From the sequence record MF360958.1: a DNA stretch of 64,000 nucleotides, one strand, 5' to 3'. Position 1 is the first letter of the stretch. Each line of letters opens with the position of its first letter. Under the pieces are notes generated by a model, which was not told the DNA's origin, ran no database searches, and was given only the letters and a program-made list of their open reading frames with translations. A program made the position numbers and the translations under genes. Of the stretch, positions 5,681 through 42,864 are shown in pieces.

Positions 5681-6045
5681 TGTAGGTTATCATCCACAGC
5701 ATCTTTAGCAATATTTGCAACACGGTCATAACCACCTTCTTCAGTACCTTCAGAATCCATAGGTTCTCCAATGGTTTCTGTATCATTATTGATTTCATTT
5801 TCATCGATTACATTAACATATTCATTTTCATCTATTTCGAATCCATCCATATTTTCAATTTCATTTATAAGATCATCTTTAGATACTGAAAAACCCATAG
5901 TGGATAATTCATTAATTATATTATTAATATGTGTAGTTTCAATATTTTTAGTTTTAAACATAACAAGAACATCGGTTAAGCTTTTATGAAGATTATCATC
6001 AAATTTTTCTGATTGTGTTTTTTCAAAAAGATCATTTATTCTCAT
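5677..6045 (-). CDS. acidic hypothetical protein with LFE leader (putative head protein)
   Basis: starts MRINDLFEK; lies in the structural operon. Confidence 0.7.
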   Translation of the reverse strand: MRINDLFEKTQSEKFDDNLHKSLTDVLVMFKTKNIETTHINNIINELSTMGFSVSKDDLINEIENMDGFEIDENEYVNVIDENEINNDTETIGEPMDSEGTEEGGYDRVANIAKDAVDDNLQ

Positions 6046-25087: not shown

Positions 25088-25521
25088 AAAATTTGCGTTA
25101 TTGTGAAAAACACAAACTTGGTGTCTTTTCTGACAAATACATGTTTTTAAGAACATTTATAGATAATAATGTAACTGAAGATGAAGCTGACAAAATAATT
25201 GATCAATTTCTTGATGATTTTGATCGTTATTGCGAAGATTATCTTCCTGCAATTAAAAAATCTGTTCTAAGATATTGTTTTAGAAAGAATACATATTATT
25301 CCTATGATGAACTATTGAATGATGATAACCTTACTAATGGTACAGATTATGGTGGTATGTGTTTAAGCTATGGTTCAAGCAGTAACCATCTAAGAGTAGG
25401 ATATGCAACAAACAATATGATTCTTAATGATCAGACTAAGAATTTTCATCTTGAAAAAATTAAGGAATATACTGGTTATAATGTAGAATGTGTAGAATAT
25501 GGGGATGCATATTATGATTAA
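25084..25521 (+). CDS. hypothetical protein
   Basis: GGGG RBS; overlaps the upstream stop. Confidence 0.7.
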   Translation: MKNLRYCEKHKLGVFSDKYMFLRTFIDNNVTEDEADKIIDQFLDDFDRYCEDYLPAIKKSVLRYCFRKNTYYSYDELLNDDNLTNGTDYGGMCLSYGSSSNHLRVGYATNNMILNDQTKNFHLEKIKEYTGYNVECVEYGDAYYD

Positions 25522-25918
25522 AGGGGTCGTTTTTGAAAATTGGCTTATAGGATGTGTCAAAAGTGATCCGAGTCTTATACAACATTTCATTAATAAGATT
25601 GATAAACAATTGATGATTAAAGCATGTGAACATAATCCTTATTGTATTAAATTTATTAAAGATCCTTCATTTGAACTAATGGCCGTATGTTTAAAATATC
25701 AACCGACTATTATAACATCAATTCCTAACAATGAAATCAAAAAGAAACACCGAGAAGAATTAGAAATTATTGCTCTTGATAATTATTGGAATTATCATTT
25801 TTATTATAGCTTTCTTTTAAGTTACTTCAATCCTCATAGTAAATGGTTTTATAAAGAAATTAATAAATTAAAACTAAAACATGGTCCAATGAAATCAACT
25901 TTAGTAAAGAAATGTTAA
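25499..25918 (+). CDS. 22-aa-repeat protein, INKxKLxxGP family (true start probably 25514)
   Basis: IKFIKDPSFELMAVC repeat; YWNYHFYY...KEINKLKLKHGP. Confidence 0.7.
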   Translation: MGMHIMIKGVVFENWLIGCVKSDPSLIQHFINKIDKQLMIKACEHNPYCIKFIKDPSFELMAVCLKYQPTIITSIPNNEIKKKHREELEIIALDNYWNYHFYYSFLLSYFNPHSKWFYKEINKLKLKHGPMKSTLVKKC

Positions 25919-26502: not shown

Positions 26503-28710
26503 ATGCGTTTAAATAATCTTTTTGAATCCAATCATCCACAAAAACTTTACGAATCCTACCAACGTTTTGTAAATGATAATAATAATGAATATTTACTAAA
26601 AGAAACTATCGAAAATAATATTCATAGTGTTATGTCTAAACAGTATGAGAAATCCAGTCTTGCGCAAATTCTTATGGATTATCATGAAGACGATCTTTAT
26701 GAATTCTGGAAAGCTAATGGTGCTGAAGGTTTACCTAAAGGATTTGGAACACAGAATGCTTTCAATGAATATAAAGATTGGATGAAGTGTATGTTAAACT
26801 TAAATGAAACTCGTCAAGAACAATCCCTACAAGCTTTATTTGAAGCTAAAAAAGATTTTATCAACATGTTTTCTGTTATTGATGAAGTCGTTGAACTTTC
26901 TAATAATATAGAAACAGAAGAACAAAAGGATAATTTTAAAGGATTAATGCATGAAGGTAGTTCAATGTTGCAAAATGCTTTTAATCATAATAATGTAGGC
27001 GAGTACTTTCTAGAACGTTTAGAGCAAAGGTTTGATAATACTCAAACAAATTATATTATATATTTTCTTCGTATGAATAAAGGCGTTATTATTAAAACTT
27101 GGATGGAGAACGGACTTATAAAACTTATAGAAGAACAAGATCCGCAATTATCTAAAAAACTCTACAAACAGTTTAATATCTTAAAAGGGCAAATTGATGA
27201 ATTAAATACCAATGCTACTTTTAATACAATTAGAAACTTTAAACAAAAAATTGAACACTTTCTAAGTTTGGATTACCAACCTATTCAGCAATTAAATCCT
27301 CTTGATTATAAATCTTTTGAAGACTTAGAAGAAGCACTATCTGAACTTGAAGATGAATGGCGTGAACAAATTGCAGAAGAAAAACGCTATCTTAAACTTC
27401 AAGATGGTGATGAAATTTTTAAAGATTATGGAAATTATGTGTGGATCAAATTAGATCGTAGCCGTTGTGAAGAAGAAGCAGACGCTATGGGGCATTGTGG
27501 GAACAGACCTGCGGGTAATACAGATGCTCGTATCCTTTCATTTAGAGAACGTATTAAAAAAGATGACAAAACACTATACAAGCCACATCTTACATTTATT
27601 TTAGAAGAAAATGGATACTTAGGTGAGATGAAGGGTTATGCTAATGACAAACCTTCCAGTAAATACCATCCTTATATCATTGATCTACTTCAAATGGATA
27701 TGGTCAAAGGCATCACCGGGGGTGGTTTTGAAGCTGAAAATAATTTTGAAATGTCCGATCTTGATACAGATGTTCGCGAACAATTAGTTAAGGAAAAACC
27801 CACTCTTGAGCCATTAGAATACTATGAAGAAAGTATGAAAGAAAATGGATATGTAGATAATAATAACGTTGTTGAAATAGTTTCAGAATACTTAGAAAAA
27901 GAATACGATGCACCTGTAAAACCTATGCAAGCATTGGGTTATGTAGTAATTAATATGGATATCAATGATGATTTTCTTAGAGTATCAGAAGATACTACTA
28001 AGACTATAGAATTGTTAAATGGTGAAGAAGAAGGAACTCGAATAGACATGATAGACGAGATAGTTCCTAATATTAATACAAAAGACTTCATAAAACTTAT
28101 GGAAGTATTACAGGAAGATAATTCCGAAACTTATGAAAAAATTTCTAATCGTGTATACAATTTCTTCGATTATATTAATAATATTGAACCTGATCTGATA
28201 AACATATTTTTCAGAAGTTATATAGATTTTTATGAAGATCAGAATACAAATGATTTAGCAGAGTTTCTATATGACATAGACTATGGTACAATAGATGTTG
28301 AAGAAATTGTTGACGAAATTAACGAGGATGATGATTTTATTATATCACAACAACAACTTGATTATATCAGTGAAACGATTGAAACATTAAATGATGAAAT
28401 AGTAATTCCAATCATGACAATATTTAAAGAAATAGCGTTTCAAAATTCTGAACAGATAGCTTTTAATAAACTTAAAAAAGAAATTCAAAACGAAGCACAC
28501 TTTTCATCATTAACGAATGATCAAGAATTAACACAATTAACAACTTCTCTAATTGATGATGGTGAACTATACGAAGTTCCAATCACCAGTATACAAAAAA
28601 TTCAGGATGAAGGATTAAGTGTTGAACTTGATGTTTCATTTCATGTTGAAAATATGATTACTCCTGATATTATTGAAGAAAATAGAGACATTATTGAAAT
28701 TGATATTTAA
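26503..28710 (+). CDS. large acidic protein with LFE leader and PcfJ-like (xMGHC) domain; putative head-packaged protein
   Basis: MRLNNLFES; EEADAMGHCG..ILSFRE..PHLTF..GEMKGYANDKP; AGGAG RBS. Confidence 0.7.
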   Translation: MRLNNLFESNHPQKLYESYQRFVNDNNNEYLLKETIENNIHSVMSKQYEKSSLAQILMDYHEDDLYEFWKANGAEGLPKGFGTQNAFNEYKDWMKCMLNLNETRQEQSLQALFEAKKDFINMFSVIDEVVELSNNIETEEQKDNFKGLMHEGSSMLQNAFNHNNVGEYFLERLEQRFDNTQTNYIIYFLRMNKGVIIKTWMENGLIKLIEEQDPQLSKKLYKQFNILKGQIDELNTNATFNTIRNFKQKIEHFLSLDYQPIQQLNPLDYKSFEDLEEALSELEDEWREQIAEEKRYLKLQDGDEIFKDYGNYVWIKLDRSRCEEEADAMGHCGNRPAGNTDARILSFRERIKKDDKTLYKPHLTFILEENGYLGEMKGYANDKPSSKYHPYIIDLLQMDMVKGITGGGFEAENNFEMSDLDTDVREQLVKEKPTLEPLEYYEESMKENGYVDNNNVVEIVSEYLEKEYDAPVKPMQALGYVVINMDINDDFLRVSEDTTKTIELLNGEEEGTRIDMIDEIVPNINTKDFIKLMEVLQEDNSETYEKISNRVYNFFDYINNIEPDLINIFFRSYIDFYEDQNTNDLAEFLYDIDYGTIDVEEIVDEINEDDDFIISQQQLDYISETIETLNDEIVIPIMTIFKEIAFQNSEQIAFNKLKKEIQNEAHFSSLTNDQELTQLTTSLIDDGELYEVPITSIQKIQDEGLSVELDVSFHVENMITPDIIEENRDIIEIDI

Positions 28711-29524: not shown

Positions 29525-30931
29525 TTATTCATAACCCATAACTTGACGAATTTTCTTTATTAAATCTTCATCAAGTTTGTCAGGGCTTACTTCTGGATTA
29601 AAGAACAGCTTTGATATGAGATTATCATCATTTAAATCAATAATATATTCTATGACCTCTCTCGTGGGGGAAGGTACTAATCGAATCAATGAAGGCTCTT
29701 GTTTTACAGTTTCTAATTGAACAGCCGGATATACTTCTTTCATATGTCTTATAGAATATGGATTATCTTTAACAGCTTTCATTTGTTGTTGTTCAGTTGG
29801 ATTATCGATATAAGCAATACCCTCTTGTGGGGATTGCTTAAATGCATATTCTACCATTTCATTATTTGGATATTGCCCATTACTATCATCATGCAATTGA
29901 TGTATATAATCAACATCATGTTTTAAAATATGCCACGCTTGTTTCTCTGTAATATTATCATAGTATTCTAAAGCGTGTATCGGACTGTATTGGAACACGT
30001 AATCAATCATTTTTTGTGTTGGGAACCCTTCGATTCTATTAAAAAAATTTAATGTTCTAGGTTCAATCTTTAATACTTTCCATATTATCTGTTCATTAAA
30101 TAAACCTTCATCTAGAGATCTAATAGCTTCAAAAGGATCATTTCTTATAGCAGTTTCAATAACTTTATCAGTTGGTTTTTCAATAAACCCTATGGACTCA
30201 ACATTTTTATTAACTGCCGCTAGTTGAACATCTTCAGATGGATTATCTATTTTCCTTATAATCCCCGGTATATATTCAATTATATCAATTAATGTTTCTT
30301 TTTTTAAATTATTAACATTTATTGCTTTTTGTATAATATCTAGATTTTGTACAAAAAAATCTTTAATATATTGTAATGAAATATCTATTGCATTCTTAAA
30401 CTCTTCGGGGGTACATTGTTTATCATTTTCATTATAAAATCCAACTAAATCATTTTTATCTATATCATATACTATCGCATATTTTTCATTTTCAGATTTA
30501 TTAAAAATATACATAAAAGCTTGATTTTGTATATAAAAATAATAAGCAAATTCATTTTCGGATTCGGTAGCAGCCGTACACCATTGAGTATTTTTTCCAT
30601 AAAAACAACTTGCATTTTTTGTTAATGGTATAACCATGAAGTAATCATCGTCATCATGAACAATTATGGAATCTTTTTTCTTAGATTTCTTCACTTCGGA
30701 CTTGGATTTTTCTTGTGATTTACTGTCAACAAACTCTTTAAATAGATTCCATCCTTGCTTAATCCAATACCCTATATCTTTATCTTGACCAGATATAGTA
30801 CCTTTTTTGGTTAATTGCTTAAAGGTTTCAAGGTACTGCTTTACTTCTTCCTCAGAGGCTTCCTGAGAAAATTTTTGTTGTGCATCTTTAAAAGATTCGA
30901 ATAAGTATTGTGTTATATGCTTAACTTTCAT
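29525..30931 (-). CDS. MKVKHITQYLFES-family protein (constant N-module, WC domain, about 10 degenerate 22-aa repeats)
   Basis: shared N-terminus; SCFYGKNTQWCT; IDNPSEDVQLAAV repeats. Confidence 0.85.
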   Translation of the reverse strand: MKVKHITQYLFESFKDAQQKFSQEASEEEVKQYLETFKQLTKKGTISGQDKDIGYWIKQGWNLFKEFVDSKSQEKSKSEVKKSKKKDSIIVHDDDDYFMVIPLTKNASCFYGKNTQWCTAATESENEFAYYFYIQNQAFMYIFNKSENEKYAIVYDIDKNDLVGFYNENDKQCTPEEFKNAIDISLQYIKDFFVQNLDIIQKAINVNNLKKETLIDIIEYIPGIIRKIDNPSEDVQLAAVNKNVESIGFIEKPTDKVIETAIRNDPFEAIRSLDEGLFNEQIIWKVLKIEPRTLNFFNRIEGFPTQKMIDYVFQYSPIHALEYYDNITEKQAWHILKHDVDYIHQLHDDSNGQYPNNEMVEYAFKQSPQEGIAYIDNPTEQQQMKAVKDNPYSIRHMKEVYPAVQLETVKQEPSLIRLVPSPTREVIEYIIDLNDDNLISKLFFNPEVSPDKLDEDLIKKIRQVMGYE

Positions 30932-31128
30932 CTATTTAAAACCTTCTCAATTGTTACGTCATCGAAAACAATTTCTTTATCGTTAGAATAAAACCATTGC
31001 TTAGGAACACTAATTTCAAAACGATCCATAGTTCCTTCTTTAGATACAATCATACGAACCATGGAAAAAGCAATATAGCTTCGATGAACTTGATGTTTTA
31101 CATCATTAATCATTATATAATCAAACAT
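30928..31128 (-). CDS. small hypothetical protein
   Basis: AAGGA RBS; overlaps the downstream start. Confidence 0.65.
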   Translation of the reverse strand: MFDYIMINDVKHQVHRSYIAFSMVRMIVSKEGTMDRFEISVPKQWFYSNDKEIVFDDVTIEKVLNR

Positions 31129-31137
31129 AATATTTCC

Positions 31138-31617
31138 TTATTGAATTTCATATTCAACATAAAACGTAGAGCCATCTTCTACAATATCTGTGTGTTCATA
31201 TCCTAATCTAGTTAATTGTGCCGCAGAATCAGGACGTTCCAATTTACGTTGTAAAATCTCAAATGTTGATCGTTCAAATACAGAAAAGCGCATTGTTTTC
31301 ATACGATAACGATAACGTCTAATAATATCCACAGCCAATTCAAAACACTCTTCAAAATGATTCATAGCTTGACGAACATTATTTTCTTGTTTAAGTGTAT
31401 TCATGGAACCAATAATCATATCTTCGACGTTAGGACTTTTGCTACTTGTTAAAACACAATATCCTTCATAATACACAATAATTATGAGATAAAGGTTTTT
31501 TGTCTTTCGAATAACTGTATATATAGCTTTCTTTTCAGGAATATAGCTATATTCACTATTATTAAATTCGCCTTCATTGGTTCCATATTGACTTTCAAAA
31601 AGTTCAGTTATTTTCAC
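31138..31617 (-). CDS. hypothetical protein with MKITELFES leader
   Basis: GTG start; leader motif. Confidence 0.7.
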   Translation of the reverse strand: MKITELFESQYGTNEGEFNNSEYSYIPEKKAIYTVIRKTKNLYLIIIVYYEGYCVLTSSKSPNVEDMIIGSMNTLKQENNVRQAMNHFEECFELAVDIIRRYRYRMKTMRFSVFERSTFEILQRKLERPDSAAQLTRLGYEHTDIVEDGSTFYVEYEIQ

Positions 31618-31618
31618 A

Positions 31619-32416
31619 CTAAGATTCCCATAATTTTTTATATAATTCTTTAACTTTTTCTGTTGGATTATCTATATATTGTATACTAGGACCATACTCT
31701 TTCACTGCTGCTAATTGTACTTGCTCAGTTGGATTGTCGATGTCTATTATTGATAGACCATGATCATTCATTACTTCTATTTGTACTTCTTCCGGTGCGT
31801 TATTCAGATCCATGGTTTTTTCTATTCTATTAGCATAATCTTCATACATATCTAATAAATGCTGTTTTGATAATCCTGTTTGTTTCTTAAATTCACTCTC
31901 GTTTAATGTCTCATCTAATTCATTAAAGTATTCAAACATATTCTTTCTTTTTGAATATGAAGCCGCATATTTAATATTATTATTTTTCATATATATATAA
32001 AATAACACAATGTTTCTTGTATAAAAGTATCGATTAAATGTGTTATCTTTATCAGCAGCCGTACACCATTTAGTATTTTTCCCATAATAACAACTAGCAT
32101 CTTTAGTTAGAGGAATAACTACCATTTTTTCATCATCTTCGTGAACAATAATGGAATCTTTTTTCTTAGATTTATTTATTTCGCGTTTGGTTTTTTCTTG
32201 TGATTTACTGTCAACAAATTCTTTACATAGATTCCATCCTTGCTTAATCCAGTACCCTATATCTTTCTCTTGTCCTGATATAGTACCTGTATTGGATAAT
32301 TGTTTAAACGTATTGAGGTATTGGTTTACTTCTTCTTCAGATGCTTCTTGGGGAAACTTTGCTTGTGCATCTTTATAGGACTCGAATAAGTATTGTGTTA
32401 TGTGTTTTACTTTCAT
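31619..32416 (-). CDS. MKVKHITQYLFES-family protein (2 repeats plus cap)
   Basis: true start at 32416 by homology to the paralogues, AGGA RBS and late box at 32439-32446; the track extends to 32524. Confidence 0.85.
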   Translation of the reverse strand: MKVKHITQYLFESYKDAQAKFPQEASEEEVNQYLNTFKQLSNTGTISGQEKDIGYWIKQGWNLCKEFVDSKSQEKTKREINKSKKKDSIIVHEDDEKMVVIPLTKDASCYYGKNTKWCTAADKDNTFNRYFYTRNIVLFYIYMKNNNIKYAASYSKRKNMFEYFNELDETLNESEFKKQTGLSKQHLLDMYEDYANRIEKTMDLNNAPEEVQIEVMNDHGLSIIDIDNPTEQVQLAAVKEYGPSIQYIDNPTEKVKELYKKLWES

Positions 32417-32480
32417 GAGATACATTTCCTGTTTGAAGTATTTATTGAATTGTTCACCAATAAATAATATAAAAATGATA

Positions 32481-32508
32481 TTGACAACACGATCATTTTT
32501 ACGTAAAA
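32481..32508 (+). promoter_or_regulatory. sigma70-type promoter for the sigma-factor operon
   Basis: TTGACA-16 bp-TAAAAT. Confidence 0.5.
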
Positions 32509-32542
32509 TTTGAAGAATATCCACAGCTATTCAGGAGTTATT

Positions 32543-32782
32543 ATGGAACATTATGGTGATACCAATACAACTGAAGATAATTCTATAATTACTCTTCTCA
32601 TCCTAAGTTTTATAATGGGTGTTGTATTCCATACATACGGTGGTAAAATCACAGGCAGTGATTTGTTGGAAAAAGAATCACAAAAAACATATGTTAGTGA
32701 ATCTGGTACAAGAATTATAAACAAAACCTCCAAATCAACACTGAAGCAAAAAACATATCCAAAATCTATTTTTGACAAATAA
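32543..32782 (+). CDS. small membrane-anchored protein
   Basis: AGGAG RBS before ATG 32543; one TM segment. Confidence 0.65.
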   Translation: MEHYGDTNTTEDNSIITLLILSFIMGVVFHTYGGKITGSDLLEKESQKTYVSESGTRIINKTSKSTLKQKTYPKSIFDK

Positions 32783-32799
32783 AACTATAGGAGTTGTGT

Positions 32800-33648
32800 A
32801 TGAATAACATCATTCCCGTATGCAGCAATGATGAAGAATTTATTAAATCTATTATGAAAATTTCCACGCCTGATCGTGAAACAGAACAAAGTATGTTTAA
32901 ATATTGGAACGAAACAGGTGATCAAGAAACAGCCCGGAGCATTGTTCTATCTCATATGAAATTTGTAGTCCATATTGCTTCTAATTATAAATATCATGGC
33001 ATTCCCCAAGCAGAACTTATCCAGCAAGGTTCCATTGGGCTTATGAAAGCATTGGAACGTTTTGATGTTTCAAAGGGTTGGCGTTTTGCAACTTATGCAG
33101 CTCATTGGATTAAATATGCAATATCTGAATTTGTTATTACTAATGTAAAAACATTGAAAATTGCAACAACAAAACCCCAACGCAAATTGTTTTACAATCT
33201 TAATCGTTATATTTCTGATGGTAGCCGTTGGCTGAATTATGATGAAAAACAATACATTGCTGATGAACTTGATGTGAAAATTTCAGACGTTGAAACTATG
33301 GAAGAACGTTTAAAACAAAAAGAATATTATGTTACCTACATGGATAGTGACCAAGAAGATCAATGGGATGGTCAGGCATATAAAGAATCGTGGTTAGCTG
33401 ATGGTAATGAAAGTTTAGAAGATCAATACATTGAAACTGTTGATAATAATAAACAAATTCAATTAATGAGAAATCAAATGAATCAGCTTAATGATCGTGA
33501 TCGGTATATTATTGAAAGAAGGCATATTGATGAGGATAAAGCTACTCTCAATGAATTGGCTGAAATTTATGATGTATCATGTGAACGAGTACGCCAGCTT
33601 GAAAATAATGCTCTAAAGAAATTGAGAAAAGCTTTAACAACACAATAA
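32800..33648 (+). CDS. rpoH: RNA polymerase sigma factor, RpoH (sigma-32)-like
   Basis: region 2.1 LSHMKFVVHIASNY; 2.2 ELIQQGSIGLMKA; RpoH box IATTKPQRKLFYNL; region 4.2 TLNELAEIYDVSCERVRQLE. Confidence 0.9.
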   Translation: MNNIIPVCSNDEEFIKSIMKISTPDRETEQSMFKYWNETGDQETARSIVLSHMKFVVHIASNYKYHGIPQAELIQQGSIGLMKALERFDVSKGWRFATYAAHWIKYAISEFVITNVKTLKIATTKPQRKLFYNLNRYISDGSRWLNYDEKQYIADELDVKISDVETMEERLKQKEYYVTYMDSDQEDQWDGQAYKESWLADGNESLEDQYIETVDNNKQIQLMRNQMNQLNDRDRYIIERRHIDEDKATLNELAEIYDVSCERVRQLENNALKKLRKALTTQ

Positions 33649-33676
33649 TAAAGCCAGCATTAATGCTGGCTTTATT
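33647..33676. terminator. bidirectional terminator between convergent genes
   Basis: 30-bp perfect palindrome AATAAAGCCAGCATTAATGCTGGCTTTATT. Confidence 0.85.
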
Positions 33677-34812
33677 TATACTAGATCTAGTATACTCGTG
33701 GCTTTTGTCTCTCTGCTTATACCGTATTTTTCCAATGTATTACCAACTTTAATATTTAAATCGTTTTGAAATTCATCACTTATTACACCTTTATGTTTAT
33801 TACTTTCAGACATTTGTTTTACAATTTCCAATGTCAACAATGATCTTAAATACTTATTATTTTTGGTAGTAAATGAAGTGGATGAATAGTATATTTCTTC
33901 ATCAATGCTTACCGAAATAAAATTAGCATCGTATTGAAAAGTTCCAGTATTAATTTGGCGTTTATCACCTTTAATGGTTATTTTTACAGGTAACGTATAA
34001 CGTTGAATCACTTTTCCATTATCCATATGATTGGTGTAGCCTTCTTCAATACCTAATGGTGTTATCTCATAAGTCGTATATTGTGTTGGAAAACTTATAC
34101 TAAGTTCTTGTTCCAGTTGTTCTATATCAACAGCGTCCGATTCAAGTTTGTTTCTAAATTCAATCAGTGTTTTTTCAGTAGGTTCTTTTAATTCATTATC
34201 ACGATATTGTACTTCAACGATTACTCTAGTTTTTCGATTTGCAATAATGGCATACTTATCATAGCGTGTATGAATAATGTATATATCGTGAACTTCATTA
34301 TACGTTTCAAAATGGTTATCACTTCCTCGGGATGAAATACACCATCTTGTTTCAGAACCTAAGTGACATGATGCTTCTTTGGTATGAGGCTTAACCACTT
34401 TCCAATCATCACCTTTAGTTACTAGTTTATATTCTGATTTAAGTTCTTTTTCATAACGTTTTTGTTCAATACGAGACTCCCAATTAATGAGAGTTTCGAT
34501 AATTAAACTATGAAATGCATCCAATCGTTGTAAAACCTCATCTTGTTCTACAGATTTGTTGAGATATTTTGTCCACATGCTGGCATCTTTTGCCTTATCC
34601 GGCGCTTTACTTCCACCACTTATTACTAATAGAATATTACTTTTAACTAATTTAGAAAAAATATCGACAGGATGTTGATCTTTTATACCCATATCGTTAG
34701 CATGACTTCGAATATCATTTAATGTATTGTCAAAATTGTACTCATTGGCAATATTATCATATGCGTTTTTAAGATCTTTGTAATTTTCAAATAAAATATG
34801 CTTTACTTTCAT
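33676..34812 (-). CDS. divergent WC-domain protein with MKVKHILFEN leader
   Basis: VVKPHTKEASCHLGSETRWCISS aligns with VIPLTKDASCYYGKNTKWCT; late box at 34839-34846. Confidence 0.75.
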   Translation of the reverse strand: MKVKHILFENYKDLKNAYDNIANEYNFDNTLNDIRSHANDMGIKDQHPVDIFSKLVKSNILLVISGGSKAPDKAKDASMWTKYLNKSVEQDEVLQRLDAFHSLIIETLINWESRIEQKRYEKELKSEYKLVTKGDDWKVVKPHTKEASCHLGSETRWCISSRGSDNHFETYNEVHDIYIIHTRYDKYAIIANRKTRVIVEVQYRDNELKEPTEKTLIEFRNKLESDAVDIEQLEQELSISFPTQYTTYEITPLGIEEGYTNHMDNGKVIQRYTLPVKITIKGDKRQINTGTFQYDANFISVSIDEEIYYSSTSFTTKNNKYLRSLLTLEIVKQMSESNKHKGVISDEFQNDLNIKVGNTLEKYGISRETKATSILDLV

Positions 34813-34856
34813 GAACTTATTCCAATGTGTATATGAATTATTTATCTAAAAAAAGT

Positions 34857-34885
34857 TTGACAACAGTGTTATTTTTTCCTATAAT
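34857..34885 (+). promoter_or_regulatory. consensus sigma70 promoter
   Basis: TTGACA-17 bp-TATAAT, with an A-tract upstream. Confidence 0.85.
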
Positions 34886-34910
34886 GGGTACATATTGTTA
34901 AGGAGATCTT

Positions 34911-36095
34911 GTGATGACTACTTATACCGCCAATATTCCTTCTGAAAACATTACAAAACTTACAAACGAAATCGGTAAGCTCAACAAAAAAGCTGTAAAG
35001 CTTGGCTGTGATGAAATCGATGTTCATCTTGGCGAAAAGTCTTACAAGAAAATCACCAACAACTCTGTAGAAGAAAGTAACTCTTATCGCGAATACATTG
35101 AGATCACTATTGAAGGCCCTACGCCTACTTTTAGCGGTTGGACTTTCCTTAGTCGTATTGAACATACCGACAGCGGTAACATCATTGCAAAGTACAACTT
35201 CGCAGATGGTATCGACATTCCTCATGAGTATCACCATACTGATGAAAAGCTCTGTGAACATTGTAATACTCGTCGTCATCGTAATAACACCTATCTGGTT
35301 GTTCACGAAGATGGTGAAATTAAGCAAGTAGGTAGCAACTGCCTTAAAGATTTCCTTGGTTTCAATTCTCCCGAACGTGTCCTGAACATTTGCACCATGA
35401 TCAGCGAGCATATCAGCAATGCTGAAAATGATGGTGATACTTATGCAGGTTCTTCTCAGGTTGTACCTATGTATTATGTTCCTGAAGTTCTCGCATATGC
35501 TGATTCACTTATTGAGCGTGAAGGTTTTCGTAATGCGCGTCATGATGATCCTACAGGTGGTATTGTTGAAAACGCTCTTAACGATCCTCTTAAATTTAAA
35601 AAGATTATGGGTGTTGATGAAATCGAACAGCGCAACTATGACAAAGCTCATAATGTTATTGACTGGTTTGCTTCTGAGCCTATTAAGGAAGATGATAGCG
35701 AATACATTATTAACCTCAAGGTAGCTATTAATGAAGGTTATATTTCGCATCGTAACATCAATCTTGTTGTGAGTGCTGTCCATGTTTACAATAAGCAAAT
35801 GGATAAGATCAAGCAAAACAAAAAGCCTTCCGAGCATCTTGGAAATATTGGTGACCGCATGAATTTTGGTCAGTGTGAAATTATTTTCATCCATTGTTTC
35901 AAAACTCAATTTGGAACTTCTATGCTTATCAAATTCCGTGATGAAGACGGTAATATGATTGCGTGGTTCTCTAGTCGTGTACGGGATGTTAAGAAAGGTG
36001 ATGTATACAACCTCATGGCTACTGTTAAGAATCATGATGAATATAAAAGTGTTAAGGAAACTGTTGTGAAGAATGCTAAACTTCACGAAGTATAA
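34911..36095 (+). CDS. phage early-type protein with CEHC zinc-finger-like motif and C-terminal OB-fold-like domain
   Basis: LCEHCNTRRHRN..QVGSNCLKDF; EHLGNIGDR..WFSS..TVK.H.EY..VKET; AAGGAG RBS; host-like codons. Confidence 0.65.
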   Translation: MMTTYTANIPSENITKLTNEIGKLNKKAVKLGCDEIDVHLGEKSYKKITNNSVEESNSYREYIEITIEGPTPTFSGWTFLSRIEHTDSGNIIAKYNFADGIDIPHEYHHTDEKLCEHCNTRRHRNNTYLVVHEDGEIKQVGSNCLKDFLGFNSPERVLNICTMISEHISNAENDGDTYAGSSQVVPMYYVPEVLAYADSLIEREGFRNARHDDPTGGIVENALNDPLKFKKIMGVDEIEQRNYDKAHNVIDWFASEPIKEDDSEYIINLKVAINEGYISHRNINLVVSAVHVYNKQMDKIKQNKKPSEHLGNIGDRMNFGQCEIIFIHCFKTQFGTSMLIKFRDEDGNMIAWFSSRVRDVKKGDVYNLMATVKNHDEYKSVKETVVKNAKLHEV

Positions 36096-36101
36096 TAATT
36101 A

Positions 36102-36139
36102 GATACCAAAGGTTGATAGTAGACACAGCCTCTGGTATC
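36102..36139. other. intergenic hairpin
   Basis: GATACCA.AGGTTG / CAGCCT.TGGTATC 14-bp stem with one mismatch and one wobble; no T-tract. Confidence 0.45.
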
Positions 36140-36164
36140 ATTTGTTCATATTTGGAGTATTGTA

Positions 36165-36446
36165 ATGGCTAAAGACGAACAGAATTGTCTCTATAAATCT
36201 CAGGATAAATGGCTCAATGGTGTCATTGGTGGTATTTGTGAACATTATGATTGGGATAAAAATTTAGGCCGTATTCTGGTTATTATTGCAATGATTGCCG
36301 GATTATGTGGTGTTGTTATTATCACATATATTGCTTTGATGTTTTTTATGACTGATCCAGAAAACGATAATGAACAACAAAACAATGATGATCAAAATGA
36401 TGAGCATTATTGCGAAACTGATGAGTATGACGATGGTAAGGTATAA
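36165..36446 (+). CDS. pspC: PspC-domain membrane protein
   Basis: LYKSQDKWLNGVIGGICEHY..GRIL..TM..YIA..FFM matches the PspC N-terminal domain pattern. Confidence 0.75.
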   Translation: MAKDEQNCLYKSQDKWLNGVIGGICEHYDWDKNLGRILVIIAMIAGLCGVVIITYIALMFFMTDPENDNEQQNNDDQNDEHYCETDEYDDGKV

Positions 36447-36448
36447 GT

Positions 36449-36661
36449 ATGAAATTAGGTCACTATTTTGTTAAAAAGTATGAATATTATTACAATGATA
36501 CTGTGTGTTATGAAACAAAGTTTCTTTGGTTTCCTACAGTTGTAGGAGACTTTTTCAAAGACGGTATTGAACTAAGATGGTTGGGTTGGGGAAGAATCTA
36601 CTGGTTATGGAATGTAACCTATGGTTGGCATAAAATTCGTTTCACAGAAGATGAACAATAA
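36449..36661 (+). CDS. small Trp-rich hypothetical protein
   Basis: ORF in the operon; AAGG RBS. Confidence 0.65.
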   Translation: MKLGHYFVKKYEYYYNDTVCYETKFLWFPTVVGDFFKDGIELRWLGWGRIYWLWNVTYGWHKIRFTEDEQ

Positions 36662-36673
36662 TAAGGTTAATTT

Positions 36674-37420
36674 ATGAGATATGATCTATACGGATTCGTA
36701 AATACCGATAATGATAATTGTCTGTATTTCGATGATTGCGATAAGACTTATAAACAAAAAGATATTATTTCTAGTTACAGATCACGCGACCTTTATGTTC
36801 ATCTATACAGTAACTGGATGAGTGCAAAAATAAAAAATCTTCATAAACAATATGACGTTATTACTCTTGTAATGGATCATGAAACGTTAAATCATTATCA
36901 AGAGAATAATTATATTAATAAAATTCTATCAGAAATGTCGAAAAATGAAAAAAATGACGCAGCGCGTTTGAATATCATTTCAATGCATCAAAACGCAGGT
37001 AATGGTGCATTTAGTACATATTGTATATTTTATTTTCGTTCAAATGATGATCGTCCATCTCTACAAAATTATTACACACTATGTTCATATCAAGATAATA
37101 CAAAGGAAGATGCTTTTATTCATTGTGAACAAGCACTAAAAGCTAATTGTGCGAATGAATCAAAAACTCATTGTGTTATTACAATGGGTCATGGCTTGGT
37201 CTTTGAAAAGTATAAGGAAACTCAATATGAAGGATTCTTTCGTGCAACGTTGAAAGAAAGTTTTAATGAATCAAAAGGAAAATTTGAACTATCATTCCCG
37301 CAAGGCGTTCATAACAGTTTTACGGAACACGATGACAAATTCATTAACCTAACAACCTATAAGCAACCGCCTGTTGAAGATTTATATGATAGAGAATTTG
37401 ATGAAGATTGGGTTGGCTAA
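36674..37420 (+). CDS. hypothetical protein (248 aa)
   Basis: ORF in the operon; AAGG RBS. Confidence 0.75.
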   Translation: MRYDLYGFVNTDNDNCLYFDDCDKTYKQKDIISSYRSRDLYVHLYSNWMSAKIKNLHKQYDVITLVMDHETLNHYQENNYINKILSEMSKNEKNDAARLNIISMHQNAGNGAFSTYCIFYFRSNDDRPSLQNYYTLCSYQDNTKEDAFIHCEQALKANCANESKTHCVITMGHGLVFEKYKETQYEGFFRATLKESFNESKGKFELSFPQGVHNSFTEHDDKFINLTTYKQPPVEDLYDREFDEDWVG

Positions 37421-37421
37421 A

Positions 37422-38756
37422 TTATTTTTTCAACGATTGAACAAAATCGTCTAAATCATTCATTTCATCTTTTTGTACATCATCAGGATTAGTGTATGAT
37501 TTTTGAGTTAATTTCTCGTATTGTTTTATAACTTTATCACTAGGGTTTTCAATGTTTGCTATAATTTTTGGATATTCTTTAACAGCTTCTAACTGTATCT
37601 TTTCCGAAGGATTATCTATATAATTTATAGACCATGGATTTTGTTTTACTGCTTCTAGTTGTATTCGTTCTGTAGGGTTATTTATAAATCTAATATTTGA
37701 GCTATCTCGTTTCACTGCTTCTAACTGTATTTTTTCAGAAGGATTATCTATAAATCTAATATTTGAGCTATCACGTTTTACTGCTTCTAATTGAACTTCT
37801 TCTGAAGGATTATCTATGAACTGAATATTTTCACCATTATATTTAACAGCTTTCATTTTCATTTCTTCTGTAGGATTATCTATAAATCGAATACTAGGTC
37901 CACTTTGTGTAACAGCTTTCATTTTCATTTCTTCTGTAGGATTATCTATAAAATCTATAGATGATGGTTTATTTTTTATAGCTTCTAATTTGACATCATC
38001 TGATGGATTTTTTATTTGTTTTATTATAAGACCGTCTTCTTTTACTGCTTCGAGTTGTAGTTTTTCAGAAGGATTCTTTATACTAGGAAATTTATTAATA
38101 TTTAGTTGTATAATATTTAATTGATCTTCTTCCGAAGCATTATTAATATCTCTCATACTTTCTATTTTTTCTTCATTTTCATTATACCATATATATAATT
38201 CATCAGTAGTTATATCTGTTTGTTTTTTAAATTGACTTTCATCTATACCTTCATCCATATTATTAAAGTATTCAAATTTATTCAACATTTTTGAGTATAC
38301 AGCAGCAAATTTTTCATTATTAGTTTTCATATATACATAAAACAATACAATGTTTTTAAGATAAAAGTATTCATTAAATTTGTTATTTTCATTACCGGAA
38401 GTACACCATTTAGTATTTTTTCCGTAATAACAACTAGCATCTTTAGTCAGAGGAATAACTACCATTTTCTCATTATCTTCGTGAGCAATGATAGAATCTT
38501 TTTTCTTAGATTTCTTTACTTCACTTTTACTTTTCTCTTGAGATTTACTATCCACGAATTCCTTAAATGAATTCCAGCCTTGTTTAATCCAATACCCTAT
38601 ATCTTTCTCTTGTCCTGATACTGTGCCTTTCTTAGCTAATTGCTTAAAGGTATCAAGGTATTGCTTCACTTCTTCCTCAGATGCTTCTTGAGCAAATTTT
38701 GATTGGGCATCTTTATAGGACTCGAATAAGTATTGTGTTATATGTTTAATTTTCAT
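37422..38756 (-). CDS. MKVKHITQYLFES-family protein (9 regular 22-aa repeats)
   Basis: shared N-module; repeats SIxFIDNPSExxQLEAVK; 37844-37886 = 37910-37952 exact 43 bp at a 66-nt period. Confidence 0.9.
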   Translation of the reverse strand: MKIKHITQYLFESYKDAQSKFAQEASEEEVKQYLDTFKQLAKKGTVSGQEKDIGYWIKQGWNSFKEFVDSKSQEKSKSEVKKSKKKDSIIAHEDNEKMVVIPLTKDASCYYGKNTKWCTSGNENNKFNEYFYLKNIVLFYVYMKTNNEKFAAVYSKMLNKFEYFNNMDEGIDESQFKKQTDITTDELYIWYNENEEKIESMRDINNASEEDQLNIIQLNINKFPSIKNPSEKLQLEAVKEDGLIIKQIKNPSDDVKLEAIKNKPSSIDFIDNPTEEMKMKAVTQSGPSIRFIDNPTEEMKMKAVKYNGENIQFIDNPSEEVQLEAVKRDSSNIRFIDNPSEKIQLEAVKRDSSNIRFINNPTERIQLEAVKQNPWSINYIDNPSEKIQLEAVKEYPKIIANIENPSDKVIKQYEKLTQKSYTNPDDVQKDEMNDLDDFVQSLKK

Positions 38757-38757
38757 T

Positions 38758-40401
38758 TTATGATTCGCCTGTTTTAATAAAATCTTTTACATCTTTTAAT
38801 AACTCATCGGATATTGGATATAATAAACCATCCAATACTTCTTTTTGTTTTTCTAAAACAGATTTTTTAAATATACTGAGTTGATCTTTATTATTCTCAC
38901 CAATAATGTGTTTAATAATATATTTAATCATTGATAGTTTTAAATCGTCTGTTATTTTATCCAATAATTTAATCAACGGTAGATAACTGTTTAGATTATC
39001 TTCAACATTACGGAGCATCTGATCATTAAATTCTATGTTAATACTATCCTTTTTCATAGATTTTATACTATCAACGACTTGTTTAATATATTTCTCCATA
39101 TCAACCGGAGTATTAGATTCTATTATAGACTTGGCAATATAATCTATATTGCTATTATTGATAATTTTATAATCAACAAGTTTTTCAAATGTAAGATATT
39201 TACTGTCTAAAATAAAAAATAATTTATCAATTTGCTTATTCCTTTTAGAATAATTTGAAAAATGTGATTCTAATATATTAATTAAATTGTTATCTATTAA
39301 ATCATTTTTTATTAAATATACTAGCAATCTTAACGTATCATTTTCCAATGATTCTTTTAATAATGATTCTTTATCTGAAACATACTCATAAGCGTTTCTC
39401 CAAATTAAATTTCTAAGGAAGTCATATTCACTATAAATCTTATGATTCTTAGAATGGTCAATGAAGCTTAATATATTGTTTTCATTAGAGTTTTCAAAAA
39501 ATAATTCTTTTATAGGTTCAAAATTAACATTTGCTGGACTCATATTTTCTATACTAAATAACAAATAATTATCAATCATGCCAAAAATGTATTCCGTAGA
39601 GGTATGTTTTATATTATTCCATAATGAATTGATTTTTTTACTTAAATAACTATTATAAATTAATCTAAAACTAGCTCGTTTATCTTTAGAAATATTATAA
39701 ATTAGATCATCATCAACATTATCCAACTCATAGAATAAACTACTATCTTCTTTAATTAGATCAACTTTATCACTAGTAGAAGCGGAACTAATATCCATTG
39801 ATTTCATAATTGTTTGTTTATATTCATTAAACAGTTTACGCAAATAATCATCATCAATAGATGTAAATTGTTTGAATTGTTTTTGAGAAATAGATTTATC
39901 CATCTCATTAAAGAATTCAAATTTATCAACTTCTTGAGAATATGCACCAGCATATTTTTTTCCTGATTTTTTTATAAACACATAAAACAATACAATATTC
40001 TTTAAATAAAAATAATTTGCAAACTCATTATCTTCATCACCTGCGGTACACCATTTAGTATTCTTTCCGTAATAACAACTCGAATCTTTACTTAAAGGAA
40101 TAACCACTATTTTTTTGTCATCATCATGAGCAATAATAGATTCGCTTTTTTTACTTTTCTTTACCTGTGATTTAGATTTTTCCTGCGACTTGCTATCCAC
40201 GAATTCCTTGAACAAATTCCATCCTTGCTTGATCCAATACCCTATATCTTTCTCTTGTCCTGATACTGTGCCTTTCTTAGCTAATTGCTTAAAGGTATCG
40301 AGGTATTGCTTCACTTCTTCCTCAGAAGCTTCTTGAGCAAACTTTGCTTGTGCATCCTTATAGGACTCAAATAAGTATTGTGTTATATGTGTAACTTTCA
40401 T
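38758..40401 (-). CDS. MKVKHITQYLFES-family protein with an unrelated helical C-terminal tail
   Basis: shared N-module with a 68-bp DNA stretch identical to 37422..38756; no NP repeats in the tail. Confidence 0.9.
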   Translation of the reverse strand: MKVTHITQYLFESYKDAQAKFAQEASEEEVKQYLDTFKQLAKKGTVSGQEKDIGYWIKQGWNLFKEFVDSKSQEKSKSQVKKSKKSESIIAHDDDKKIVVIPLSKDSSCYYGKNTKWCTAGDEDNEFANYFYLKNIVLFYVFIKKSGKKYAGAYSQEVDKFEFFNEMDKSISQKQFKQFTSIDDDYLRKLFNEYKQTIMKSMDISSASTSDKVDLIKEDSSLFYELDNVDDDLIYNISKDKRASFRLIYNSYLSKKINSLWNNIKHTSTEYIFGMIDNYLLFSIENMSPANVNFEPIKELFFENSNENNILSFIDHSKNHKIYSEYDFLRNLIWRNAYEYVSDKESLLKESLENDTLRLLVYLIKNDLIDNNLINILESHFSNYSKRNKQIDKLFFILDSKYLTFEKLVDYKIINNSNIDYIAKSIIESNTPVDMEKYIKQVVDSIKSMKKDSINIEFNDQMLRNVEDNLNSYLPLIKLLDKITDDLKLSMIKYIIKHIIGENNKDQLSIFKKSVLEKQKEVLDGLLYPISDELLKDVKDFIKTGES

Positions 40402-40413
40402 TTTACATATGCC

Positions 40414-41715
40414 TTATGGTGTATATTCTTTTAGATTTCCTGATTCGTTCAATTCATATTCAGTAGCTTTTTCATTCCATGTTTCTTTACTTTGTGCATA
40501 TTGTTCTAGTTGTTTTAGAAATTCTTTTGCTGTATCCCACTTTTGCATACCTACGGCTCTTGCAGCATAAATAGCAAGCCAGTGAACTTCATTATAAGGT
40601 ACTAATCTGTCATATTGTCTGGCGTAAGTAAGCAAGCCTTTGTTTATTTCTTCTCTATATTCTTCAAAGTCTTTTTCAAACCATTCCGCGTTATTTTTTA
40701 ACTCTTGGTCTATTCTTTTTAAAAATTTATCTGTGTTTTCAATATATTCTAATACTTTATTCAATTTTTCTTTAACAGCTTCATAACCGTCTTTATCAGA
40801 ACCGTATTTCATTTGATGGGTCATACGATGAATAAGATCTCCTGTATGTTCAATAACAACATTCAAAACACCCCCACCTATAAGATGTTGTAGCCTAACC
40901 ATAACAGTTTCGGGCTTGCCTCTTTGTTCTTCGCCAATTATAGAAAATTCTTCTCGAACAAACTTTGGCATTTCATCATTGGAATCATTATCATCTTCGT
41001 TAATATTTTCTTTATCTCTAAGCAATTCATCGACATGATATAAGAAACGTTTCATAAATCGTTTCCAAACACGTTGATCTCTTACATCAGAACTTTTAAA
41101 GAATTGATCAAAATAATCAGTAAAGGTTGGACTCATTTTTGAATTACCTAATTTACGAATAAGTTCATCACTTTTAAGATATTTTTCCAACTTATCAGGA
41201 TCAACATTTTTATCTCGTAATTGTTGAGCCGCATTAATTGCATACGCTTCAATTTCTTTTTTCTGCGATAAGTATTCTTTCCAAGATTTTTCATGTTGGA
41301 AATCTTTTCTTCGAACTGTCGATACAGAGTCTTTATAATTAGCTCTTAATGTTTGAATAACATGAACCATCTCATGAACAATCATTTGTCGTAATTCGAA
41401 TAAAAAGTTATCTATATCATTATTCATTTTTTCTTTATTAAAAAGAAAATTAGCGGTCAATAATATAGCTTCTTCTTTTTTATTATCAACACTAACTGAA
41501 ATATCAGCATAGTTAGGTTTTGTATGAGAACGTACTGATACTTCAGTAGGAATTTCTATATCATAATCATTGAGTATATCTTTAAGAGCACGTTTCACAA
41601 CAGTGGTAAAATTTTTCACATCATCATTGGTTGCGAGATGTTTTTTAAGAACATCCTGAACATGATCTTCTATTTGTTTCGATGATATAGCTTCGGTGAT
41701 TTGTTTAACTTTCAT
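40414..41715 (-). CDS. two-domain protein with MKVKQITEA leader and zincin-like HExxH domain
   Basis: IVHEMVHVIQ...EIEAYA; internal INEDDNDS linker. Confidence 0.7.
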   Translation of the reverse strand: MKVKQITEAISSKQIEDHVQDVLKKHLATNDDVKNFTTVVKRALKDILNDYDIEIPTEVSVRSHTKPNYADISVSVDNKKEEAILLTANFLFNKEKMNNDIDNFLFELRQMIVHEMVHVIQTLRANYKDSVSTVRRKDFQHEKSWKEYLSQKKEIEAYAINAAQQLRDKNVDPDKLEKYLKSDELIRKLGNSKMSPTFTDYFDQFFKSSDVRDQRVWKRFMKRFLYHVDELLRDKENINEDDNDSNDEMPKFVREEFSIIGEEQRGKPETVMVRLQHLIGGGVLNVVIEHTGDLIHRMTHQMKYGSDKDGYEAVKEKLNKVLEYIENTDKFLKRIDQELKNNAEWFEKDFEEYREEINKGLLTYARQYDRLVPYNEVHWLAIYAARAVGMQKWDTAKEFLKQLEQYAQSKETWNEKATEYELNESGNLKEYTP

Positions 41716-41731
41716 ATTCGTTTCCCGTTAG

Positions 41732-42463
41732 TTATTTATATAATTCCTTTACTTTTTCAGTGGGATTATCAATAGAATCAATACGATCAGGTTCATCTTT
41801 TAAAATTTCTATTTGGATATCTTCAGGTGTATTATCCAAATCCATTGCATGGTATAAAAAATCTTCATATTTGAGATATAACCTATCTAACATATTTTCA
41901 TCGATATTAAATTTATCTTTAATTATTTCCAATTGTTCATCTTCTAATTCTTCATCATATTCATTAACATATTCAATTTCTTCTGTACTATCAAAAGTTG
42001 GATATTTTATAGCAATTTTTTCATCACTTATTTTAGATAATACATAAAATAAAACAGTTTGGAATTGATAAAAATATTGATTAAACTTATTATCTTCATA
42101 ACCAGAAGTACACCATTTAGTATTTTTTCCGTAGTAACAACTAGCATCTTTAGTCAGAGGAATAACTATCATTTTCTCATCATCTTCATGAGCAATAATG
42201 GAATCGCTTTTTTTACCTTTTTTTACTTGAGATTTACTTTTCTCTTGCGATTTACTATCCACAAATTCTTTAAATGAATTCCAGCCCTGCTTTATCCAAT
42301 ACCCTATATCTTTTTCCTGCCCTGATACAGTACCTTTTTTAGCTAGTTGCTTAAAGATATCAAGGTATTGCTTTACTTCTTCATCAGAAGCTTCCTGAGC
42401 AAATTTTGCTTGTGCATCTTTATAGGATTCAAATAAATATTGTGTGATGTGTTTAACTTTCAT
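41732..42463 (-). CDS. MKVKHITQYLFES-family protein (shortest; 1 repeat plus cap)
   Basis: shared N-module; ends IDNPTEKVKELYK. Confidence 0.9.
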   Translation of the reverse strand: MKVKHITQYLFESYKDAQAKFAQEASDEEVKQYLDIFKQLAKKGTVSGQEKDIGYWIKQGWNSFKEFVDSKSQEKSKSQVKKGKKSDSIIAHEDDEKMIVIPLTKDASCYYGKNTKWCTSGYEDNKFNQYFYQFQTVLFYVLSKISDEKIAIKYPTFDSTEEIEYVNEYDEELEDEQLEIIKDKFNIDENMLDRLYLKYEDFLYHAMDLDNTPEDIQIEILKDEPDRIDSIDNPTEKVKELYK

Positions 42464-42834: not shown

Positions 42835-42864
42835 TTGACAAAATTATCCTCCAACGGTTATAAT
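42835..42864 (+). promoter_or_regulatory. sigma70-type promoter
   Basis: TTGACA-18 bp-TATAAT upstream of the RNA ligase. Confidence 0.75.

Follow-up and report, generated by a model that had tools for sequence, protein, structure and literature searches.

Viral families in which a constant module is joined to repeat binders, with lineage-specific expansion, varying copy number and conversion between neighbours, are familiar from poxviruses and giant viruses (the ankyrin, F-box and BTB families). Jumbo phages, for their part, spend much coding capacity on paralogous families without assigned function. Among large myoviruses, multigene families whose N-termini are kept while the remainder diverges include the internal proteins of T4, gp53/gp54 of SPN3US and the gp93 group of phiKZ. 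In the internal proteins of T4, an N-terminal peptide of 10–20 residues targets the protein to the prohead and is removed after a glutamate, and the paralogous ejection proteins of SPN3US have identical N-termini followed by a diverged remainder (PMC5694885). Here we describe a family of Salicola phage SCTP-2, represented by five genes (gp34, gp37, gp45, gp46 and gp48) lying between positions 29525 and 42463 of the window, that is, of the whole stretch of 64,000 nucleotides that was analysed (bases 1–64000 of record MF360958.1). The anatomy of this family is now clear: a widespread and constrained N-terminal domain with no curated model, which we call the W-C domain after its invariant Trp-Cys pair, is joined to swappable tails that are putative binders.

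The SCTP-2 family is similar to the T4 and SPN3US proteins in having an N-terminal peptide with x-x-Glu at its end and a T4-type prohead protease encoded by the same genome, and in that one relative with the W-C domain has been detected in particles. However, no sequence or fold relation to them was found, and the part conserved here is a domain of 205 residues, predicted to be folded and with an invariant W-C, not merely a propeptide. The likeness to the poxvirus and giant-virus repeat families is one of analogy, and the two differ in their constant module and in the domain of life to which their hosts belong. The alpha-solenoid repeat DUF4116 (PF13475), found in bacteria, giant viruses and protists and without assigned function (PMC8078820), matches the tails of gp45, of many relatives and, marginally, of gp34; however, that model covers the tail alone, the N-terminal domain has no model, and gp46 has no such repeats. 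The behaviour of the family can moreover be dated: its copies are old, its first 120 residues are under purifying selection, conversion at the 5' end is sporadic and copy number is specific to the lineage.

Age and constraint of the N-terminal domain

SCTP-2 is a myovirus of 440,001 bp (approximately 29% G+C) of Italian saltern origin. The five open reading frames listed in the initial annotation were all present on the minus strand, each recorded as a 'hypothetical protein': gp34 (29525–30931, 468 amino acids), gp37 (31619–32416, 265 amino acids from the ATG at 32416), gp45 (37422–38756, 444 amino acids), gp46 (38758–40401, 547 amino acids) and gp48 (41732–42463), which at 243 amino acids is the shortest of the five and was the one chosen for structure modelling. 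Their common N-terminal module was readily recovered by tblastn with that of gp45 (66–84% identity over 155–199 amino acids, E 1e-68 to 1e-96). A scan of the whole record raised the family to seven members with the addition of gp40 and gp435. The former (33676–34812, minus strand, 378 amino acids), which had been put forward as a distant relative, proved to be a true, divergent paralogue (E 4e-8) with T-R-W-C at the motif and a tail without repeats; the latter (record positions 346469–348415, 648 amino acids) is 38–44% identical over the domain. In GenBank, gp37 starts at a GTG at 32524, which adds 36 residues (31619–32524). The true start is most likely the ATG at 32416, because the paralogues align from there and an ATAAATA box (32439–32445, see below) lies inside the annotated extension.

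The five genes had been described as recently duplicated, with high DNA identity that included synonymous sites, and as a gene accordion, that is, the product of recent tandem amplification. Instead, they very probably belong to an old modular multigene family. Over codons 1–120, DNA identity among the five genes was 79–88%, the proportion of synonymous differences (pS) was 0.44–0.74 and the synonymous rate (dS) was 0.66–3.0 (Nei–Gojobori). At identical amino acids the same codon was used in 67% of cases among the SCTP-2 copies vs. 57% predicted from codon usage alone; between SCTP-2 and a metagenomic relative the figures were 60% vs. 58%. Since synonymous differences are near saturation and codon identity is little above what codon usage would give, the copies are old, and near-identity extending to synonymous sites, the mark of a recent accordion, was not observed. 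Recent duplication or homogenisation as the source of the likeness between copies was ruled out by the same estimates and counts.

At the protein level, identity among the copies was 81–92% over residues 1–120 and 25–52% onward to approximately residue 225. In codons 1–120, the non-synonymous proportion was 0.04–0.10 and the ratio of non-synonymous to synonymous rates (dN/dS) 0.03–0.15, compared to a dN/dS of 0.34–1.17 in the aligned codons 121–222 at the same synonymous values. Therefore, the module is constant because it is constrained and not because it is young, and the constancy of residues 1–120 is mainly due to purifying selection. The drop in identity that had been reported as an abrupt divergence at about 120 residues is real, but homology does not end there, as a single predicted domain continues to about residue 205.

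This domain of approximately 205 residues starts at Met1 and consists of a helical subdomain followed by an alpha/beta core with an invariant G-x4-W-C. It is encoded by 30317–30931 in gp34, 31802–32416 in gp37, 38142–38756 in gp45, 39787–40401 in gp46 and 41849–42463 in gp48. An AlphaFold2 model of gp48, made with 35 homologues as input (mean predicted local distance difference test score of 87.6), predicts five helices at residues 4–87, a beta-hairpin at 88–102 and three short helices at 105–133, the second of which begins with W117-C118; a second hairpin (136–155) and a strand (164–166) are predicted to follow, and then a linker and the repeat helices. Thus, the step in conservation at residue 120 falls inside the fold, directly after the W-C motif. 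Across 139 diverse relatives, G112, W117 and C118 were conserved in 100%, E12, P102 and Y130 in 99%, S108 in 98%, A151 in 95%, Y140 in 94% and D170 in 93%.

Searches of the PDB with the N-terminal domain gave no match by sequence profile and none below E 1 by fold (Foldseek), and no model of Pfam, NCBIfam or PADLOC matched it. The only PHROGs matched were two of unknown function, phrog_17056 and phrog_28193, with E values of 1e-99 to 1e-264 for the five proteins, which means that the family has already been catalogued as one of unknown function. The match to phrog_28193 spans the whole of gp46, but merely the N-terminal 200–270 residues of the other four. Among the viral structures of BFVD, the Foldseek neighbours of the gp48 model include proteins named as ankyrin and leucine-rich repeat (LRR) proteins, one of them a giant-virus ankyrin protein.

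The family is large. A profile of the N-terminal domain retrieved 7,555 clusters at E ≤ 1e-3 and 3,171 at E ≤ 1e-10 (representatives at 50% identity), in which the domain nearly always begins at residue 1 of a protein of 300–700 residues. In IMG/VR, at least 177 stretches were confirmed on contigs of 5–367 kb, mostly with one copy per 20 kb and at times with two or three, and some of these relatives carry two domains in a single giant protein. Giant metagenomic proteins of 1,400–2,000 residues with two to five W-C domains per chain were also seen (P0035 and P0066; loci L019 5426–11455, L056 1–5166 and L037 7931–12232). As only 11 loci, mostly in metagenome-assembled genomes, were found in 185,579 prokaryotic genomes (one per species), the family is essentially viral. 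Among 50,697 GenBank phage records searched by tblastn, it was present in SCTP-2 and in PA5oct-like Pseudomonas jumbo phages only, the latter with one copy each.

Copy number differs between related phages. Compared to the seven members of SCTP-2, a phage of the saltern-type assembly ERZ4750308, represented by two contigs of equal coverage, has at least 12 copies with 0–9 repeats plus a gp40-like gene, and a marine contig of 361 kb has one copy. These differences in copy and repeat number show that the genes are not static identical paralogues.

Variable tails and exchange between copies

The proposed architecture of a constant N-terminal module with variable repeat tails was borne out both within SCTP-2 and beyond it. 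Among 99 relatives, DUF4116 was found in the tails of 15, and the module is also carried on pentapeptide, WG-beta, LRR and ankyrin tails (the last in protein P0030). In SCTP-2, a repeat profile recognised three units of 22 residues in gp34, two in gp37, eight in gp45, none in gp46 and one in gp48. The count of about ten previously given for gp34 was therefore too high, its three recognisable units lying within a region of otherwise degenerate helical sequence, whereas the counts for the other genes held broadly. In gp45, one degenerate first unit and the eight canonical DUF4116 units occupy 37548–38141, and a cap and an acidic tail (37425–37547) are C-terminal to them. As had been noticed, three proteins (gp37, gp45 and gp48) end in the same cap, N-P-[ST]-[ED]-K-V...Y.K, and this cap is kept at the C-termini of metagenomic relatives. 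With the Pfam model of DUF4116 (gathering score of 24.9 bits), gp45 passed with 62.3 bits in seven stretches and gp34 fell just under the threshold with 24.6 bits; gp37, gp46 and gp48 gave no match to it, the units of gp37 and gp48 being seen with the family-specific repeat profile.

Within the 22-residue unit, entropy was low at the framework positions (N-P-[ST]-E, A10, I18 and I21) and high at positions 13–16 and 19, as expected if these loop positions form a binding surface. Two pairs of units of gp45 (3/4 and 5/6) were 82% and 88% identical in DNA, compared to 52–70% for other pairs. This fits occasional duplication of units. Small proteins made wholly of the same repeat are also encoded by SCTP-2: gp480–gp483 (record 396709–398910), four of them tandemly arranged immediately behind the tail sheath gene, gp518 (418776–419564), gp522 (421106–421816) and, in the window, gp29 (25514–25918; DUF4116 match with E 6.7e-6).

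The tail of gp46 is an orphan helical region. A database search with it returned gp46 alone, and its relative P0010 (locus L003, 6849–8555), from the ERZ4750308 phage, was detectable only in a small pairwise search (24% identity over 358 amino acids, E 2e-12, for the tail; 39% over 568 amino acids at full length). An assignment to polymorphic toxins or cargo did not hold: the tails are repeat scaffolds or this orphan helical region, no toxin domain was matched, and the copies are not followed by a small partner gene that is conserved. It is plausible, as the initial annotation had it, that the system is not a diversity-generating retroelement. The repeats are in-frame tandem units and not a template/variable pair, and the annotations of the record include no reverse transcriptase, although no profile search aimed at one was made.

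The 68-nucleotide run reported as identical between adjacent paralogues, at 38587–38654 in gp45 and 40232–40299 in gp46, is exact and maximal, and its length was significant by permutation (P = 0.00035, given 51 mismatches in the pair). In the other nine gene pairs the longest identical runs were of 35 nucleotides or less and not significant (P of 0.10–0.86). In a tree of residues 1–120, the five SCTP-2 proteins were monophyletic in 83% of bootstraps and a pairing of gp46 with P0010 was never seen, whereas in a tree of residues 121–205 the copies of neither genome grouped together (0%), and in this region identity within a genome was no higher than between genomes. The gene gp40 also has an orthologue in the related metagenomic phage (L003 14600–15328, 36% identity over 242 amino acids). 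As each of the gp46 and gp40 types has an orthologue in the other phage, at least these two types predate the split of the two phages.

Some recombination at the 5' end is thus supported, because residues 1–120 group by genome while the tail of gp46 is orthologous to that of P0010, and because of the 68-nucleotide tract. These comparisons point to one of two histories for the first 360 nucleotides: exchange between the copies of one genome, or co-evolution with a partner particular to each genome. The 68-nucleotide tract, a candidate for a short gene conversion between gp45 and gp46, speaks directly for conversion. Of the idea of diversification by recombination through the 5' module, limited and sporadic exchange or conversion survives, but a recent accordion does not.

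Possible virion association and rival explanations

The five genes sit in two tight minus-strand runs, gp49-gp48-gp47-gp46-gp45 and gp37-gp36-gp35-gp34-gp33. Three intergenic regions lie between divergent genes; in these, gp38, gp41 and gp50 on the plus strand are preceded by matches to 11–12 of the 12 positions of the sigma-70 consensus, whereas the minus-strand family units are not. These plus-strand promoters lie at 32481–32509, 34857–34885 and 42835–42864, each facing a unit that bears family genes, and the genes they lead are gp38 (followed by the sigma-factor-like gp39), gp41 and the RNA ligase gene gp50. A different box, ATAAATA, was read from the upstream sequences of SCTP-2 (background of 0.00041 per position per strand, approximately 1.8% per 45 nucleotides). 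It is found 17–26 nucleotides upstream of the start codons of gp37, gp40, gp47, gp435 and gp31, and on the minus strand of the window at 32439–32445 (22 nucleotides from the gp37 ATG), 34839–34845 (26 from that of gp40) and 41733–41739 (17 from that of gp47, where it could serve gp47, gp46 and gp45). It also precedes the genes for the portal (gp90), gp89, gp92, gp98, the tail sheath (gp477) and the terminase (gp224). Judged from these positions, ATAAATA may be a late promoter element and the family may be expressed with the late, structural class.

A putative connection with the virion comes from phage PA5oct, whose protein EST35_0205 contains the domain (E 2.5e-20) and is annotated as 'structural protein, ESI-MS/MS' (electrospray ionisation tandem mass spectrometry). 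Its gene lies between one that is annotated in MIJ3 as the large terminase and another structural gene.

The N-terminal leader of the proteins is also suggestive. All five have L-F-E at residues 10–12, and the pattern [LI]-x-E-[GS]-[YF] is kept in 98–99% of the wide family (L, I or V at position 10 in 98% and E at position 12 in 99% of the 139 relatives). The SCTP-2 annotations include a T4-type portal, a prohead protease (gp93) and capsid genes, so that an [LI]-x-Glu leader and a gp21-type prohead protease do occur in the same genome, a match of pattern to the capsid-targeted internal proteins of T4. A further x-x-E site, directly behind W-C, was considered as a propeptide boundary and dropped, as nothing is conserved there in the wide-alignment summary. 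A shorter leader, M-[KR]-[ILV]-x-x-L-[FY]-E-[SNK], was found 17 times at N-termini, compared to 4.0 expected from its internal rate. It heads gp7 (5677–6045), gp31 (from 26503), gp33 (from 29514) and gp36 (from 31617) in the window and gp214 (209669–210637) and gp250 (243350–244204) elsewhere in the record, proteins between which BLAST shows no other relationship. M-A-N-L-F-E-N is the start of the major capsid protein, gp95 (record 83184).

Taken together, our best explanation is the following. The five genes, gp40 and gp435 very probably stem from an old expansion, specific to this lineage, within a large and mostly viral family of uncharacterised proteins, in which an N-terminal domain is followed by an interchangeable C-terminal part, either alpha-solenoid repeats of the DUF4116 type with a cap or another tail. 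The N-terminal domain would be what the members have in common, as a handle or an activity, and target-binding specificity would reside in the repeat tails, modules that vary at loop positions 13–16 and 19. The proteins would be made late, associated with the virion and possibly delivered with the DNA, and the [LI]-x-E leader could, in the manner of T4, serve as a signal for capsid targeting or for the prohead protease. We give this explanation as a whole an even chance of being correct. Its part concerning proteins that are virion-associated or ejected is possible, with the balance tilted somewhat against it. Unlikely is the extension by which the W-C domain would define a large, unnamed class of modular proteins delivered by phages: leader and domain would direct incorporation into the head, perhaps with processing, the swappable tails would bind host targets after ejection, and the leader on gp7, gp31, gp33, gp36, gp214 and gp250 would mark a wider packaged set.

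Several observations weigh against our best explanation. The ATAAATA box is not specific, because approximately 100 gene starts of SCTP-2 have it; no exact copy is found ahead of gp49/gp48, and its role as a promoter is itself read from its position. The particle proteomics in question is that of PA5oct and not of SCTP-2, and since the PA5oct particle list of 93 proteins includes enzymes unrelated to the virion (PMC7318152), detection there is not proof of packaging. Besides, the family cluster has early-looking genes around it, and approximately 36 kb separates it from the head module. In the gp48 model L-F-E is inside the first predicted helix, and in gp435 it stands at residues 20–22, so it fits a structural residue as well as it fits a cleavage site. 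Finally, neither a conserved histidine nor another obvious catalytic partner for the cysteine was found among the 139 relatives.

If the proteins were not packaged, they could be intracellular effectors, in which the domain would be a Cys-dependent enzyme or an interaction module and the tails would steer the proteins to distinct targets, themselves proteins of the host or the phage, in the service of takeover or counter-defence. The invariant W-C at the start of a helix, with conserved S108, Y130, Y140 and D170, would suit this role, as would tails that are classical protein-binding scaffolds and neighbours that are non-structural (a sigma-factor-like gene, an RNA ligase, an exonuclease). However, no enzyme was matched by fold or sequence in the PDB or Pfam, the missing catalytic partner counts here too, the PA5oct relative was detected in particles and is encoded within a block of structural genes, and the strong sigma-70 promoters that the early-looking neighbours possess are missing from the family units; we hold this explanation to be somewhat unlikely. 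Constant-anchor, variable-tip designs are usual in phage fibres, and the proteins might instead be external decoration or fibre-associated proteins, anchored to capsid or tail by the N-terminal domain and binding surfaces through the repeats. The 'structural' annotation of the PA5oct relative and the canonical 22-residue repeats in gp480–gp483, directly after the tail sheath gene, speak for it, but the receptor-binding proteins known are trimeric and rich in beta structure, unlike alpha-solenoid monomers, neither a fibre nor a decoration protein was among the Foldseek matches and the genes are far from the tail module; we hold it to be very improbable.

By analogy, the proteins could also serve as substrate receptors for phage Clp proteolysis, the constant domain docking on ClpA/ClpX/ClpS-ClpP and the tails recruiting different substrates, a role played in large eukaryotic viruses by F-box or BTB ankyrin proteins. 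SCTP-2 does encode a full Clp set (the ClpA-like gp70 at 57159–59375 of the window, ClpP gp122, ClpS gp192 and ClpX gp194), and a constant handle with repeat binders, along with the giant-virus ankyrin protein among the structural matches, is consistent with such receptors. However, relatives occur on many viral contigs of 5–150 kb and no similarity to known Clp adaptors was seen, so that this pure analogy is hardly probable at all. As to the initial proposal, namely a carrier-plus-binder cargo system that arose by recent amplification of an accordion and that host-defence pressure actively diversifies through slippage of repeats and recombination at the 5' module, it draws on the 68-nucleotide tract, on the uncoupled module and tail trees of gp46 and P0010, on the two similar pairs of gp45 units and on a copy number that varies between relatives. 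Against it stand the pS values and a codon identity close to random, a best-conserved 360 nucleotides that are still just 79–88% identical, the want of an unusual identical run in nine of the ten gene pairs and a selective agent that is unsupported; its 'recent' part is largely refuted, and the proposal as such is improbable. What depends on the choice between a packaged and an unpackaged family is considerable. If the virion clue is true, many new phage proteins that accompany the DNA into the cell would come from this family, and in T4-like giant phages such proteins could be traced simply by the sequence of their short leader; if it is false, this is a well-described but ordinary multigene family.

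gp31, PcfJ-like proteins and neighbouring genes

A second distant relative had been proposed in gp31 (26503–28710, plus strand), with M-G-H-C in place of the W-C motif. This relationship was not recovered: hmmsearch gave no match at E ≤ 10, and the probabilities of hhalign were 0.7% and 2%. The protein gp31 belongs to a separate family (95 matches, with an invariant M-G-H-C-G-N) and has only the short N-terminal L-F-E leader in common with the five. The confident core of its model (residues 300–440) matches PcfJ-like phage proteins of BFVD (E 8.6e-4, 8e-3 and 9.7e-3), a search that did not retrieve proteins of the W-C family.

The label PcfJ-like (PF14284), given to the W-C domain together with a possible catalytic role, fared no better with Pfam. 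No Pfam match to PcfJ at E ≤ 1 was obtained with the five proteins, gp40 or gp31; among relatives, one of 99 with the W-C domain (E 1.7e-4) and one of 41 of gp31 (E 0.007) matched. The gp48 model gave weak Foldseek matches to PcfJ-like entries of BFVD (E 0.14 and 2.2), and no solved PcfJ structure turned up in the fold search of the PDB. Nevertheless, the models of both kinds of protein show a similar succession of elements (hairpin, helix, aromatic/His-Cys, hairpin, strand, helix), although the two families differ as far as a profile–profile probability of 0.7–2% can tell and it is the gp31 family that matches the PcfJ-like models (E 9e-4). Going by the models, the W-C domain and the gp31/PcfJ-like proteins may have a very remote common origin.

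Within the array, between gp48 and gp46, lies the unrelated gene gp47 (40414–41715, minus strand, 433 amino acids), which has an HExxH motif and weak matches to SprT-like proteins (E 0.09) and to PHROGs; its start, M-K-V-K-Q-I-T-E, resembles the family leader. Between the two halves of the cluster, gp42 (36165–36446, plus strand) encodes a PspC-domain protein (E 1e-13), and a terminator-like hairpin with a stem of 13 bp is located at 33647–33676, between the convergent genes gp39 and gp40.

Other genes common to the window and the related loci were few. On the marine contig k127_358118 of ERZ909434 (360,972 bp), cas3, cas5d and csd1 genes of a type I-C-like system (L004, 1–3670) stand 4–10 kb away from two other genes, one with DUF4116 and one of the W-C family. 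In locus L003, an ART-PolyVal (ADP-ribosyltransferase) gene (14133–14621) lies directly upstream of the gp40-like family gene.

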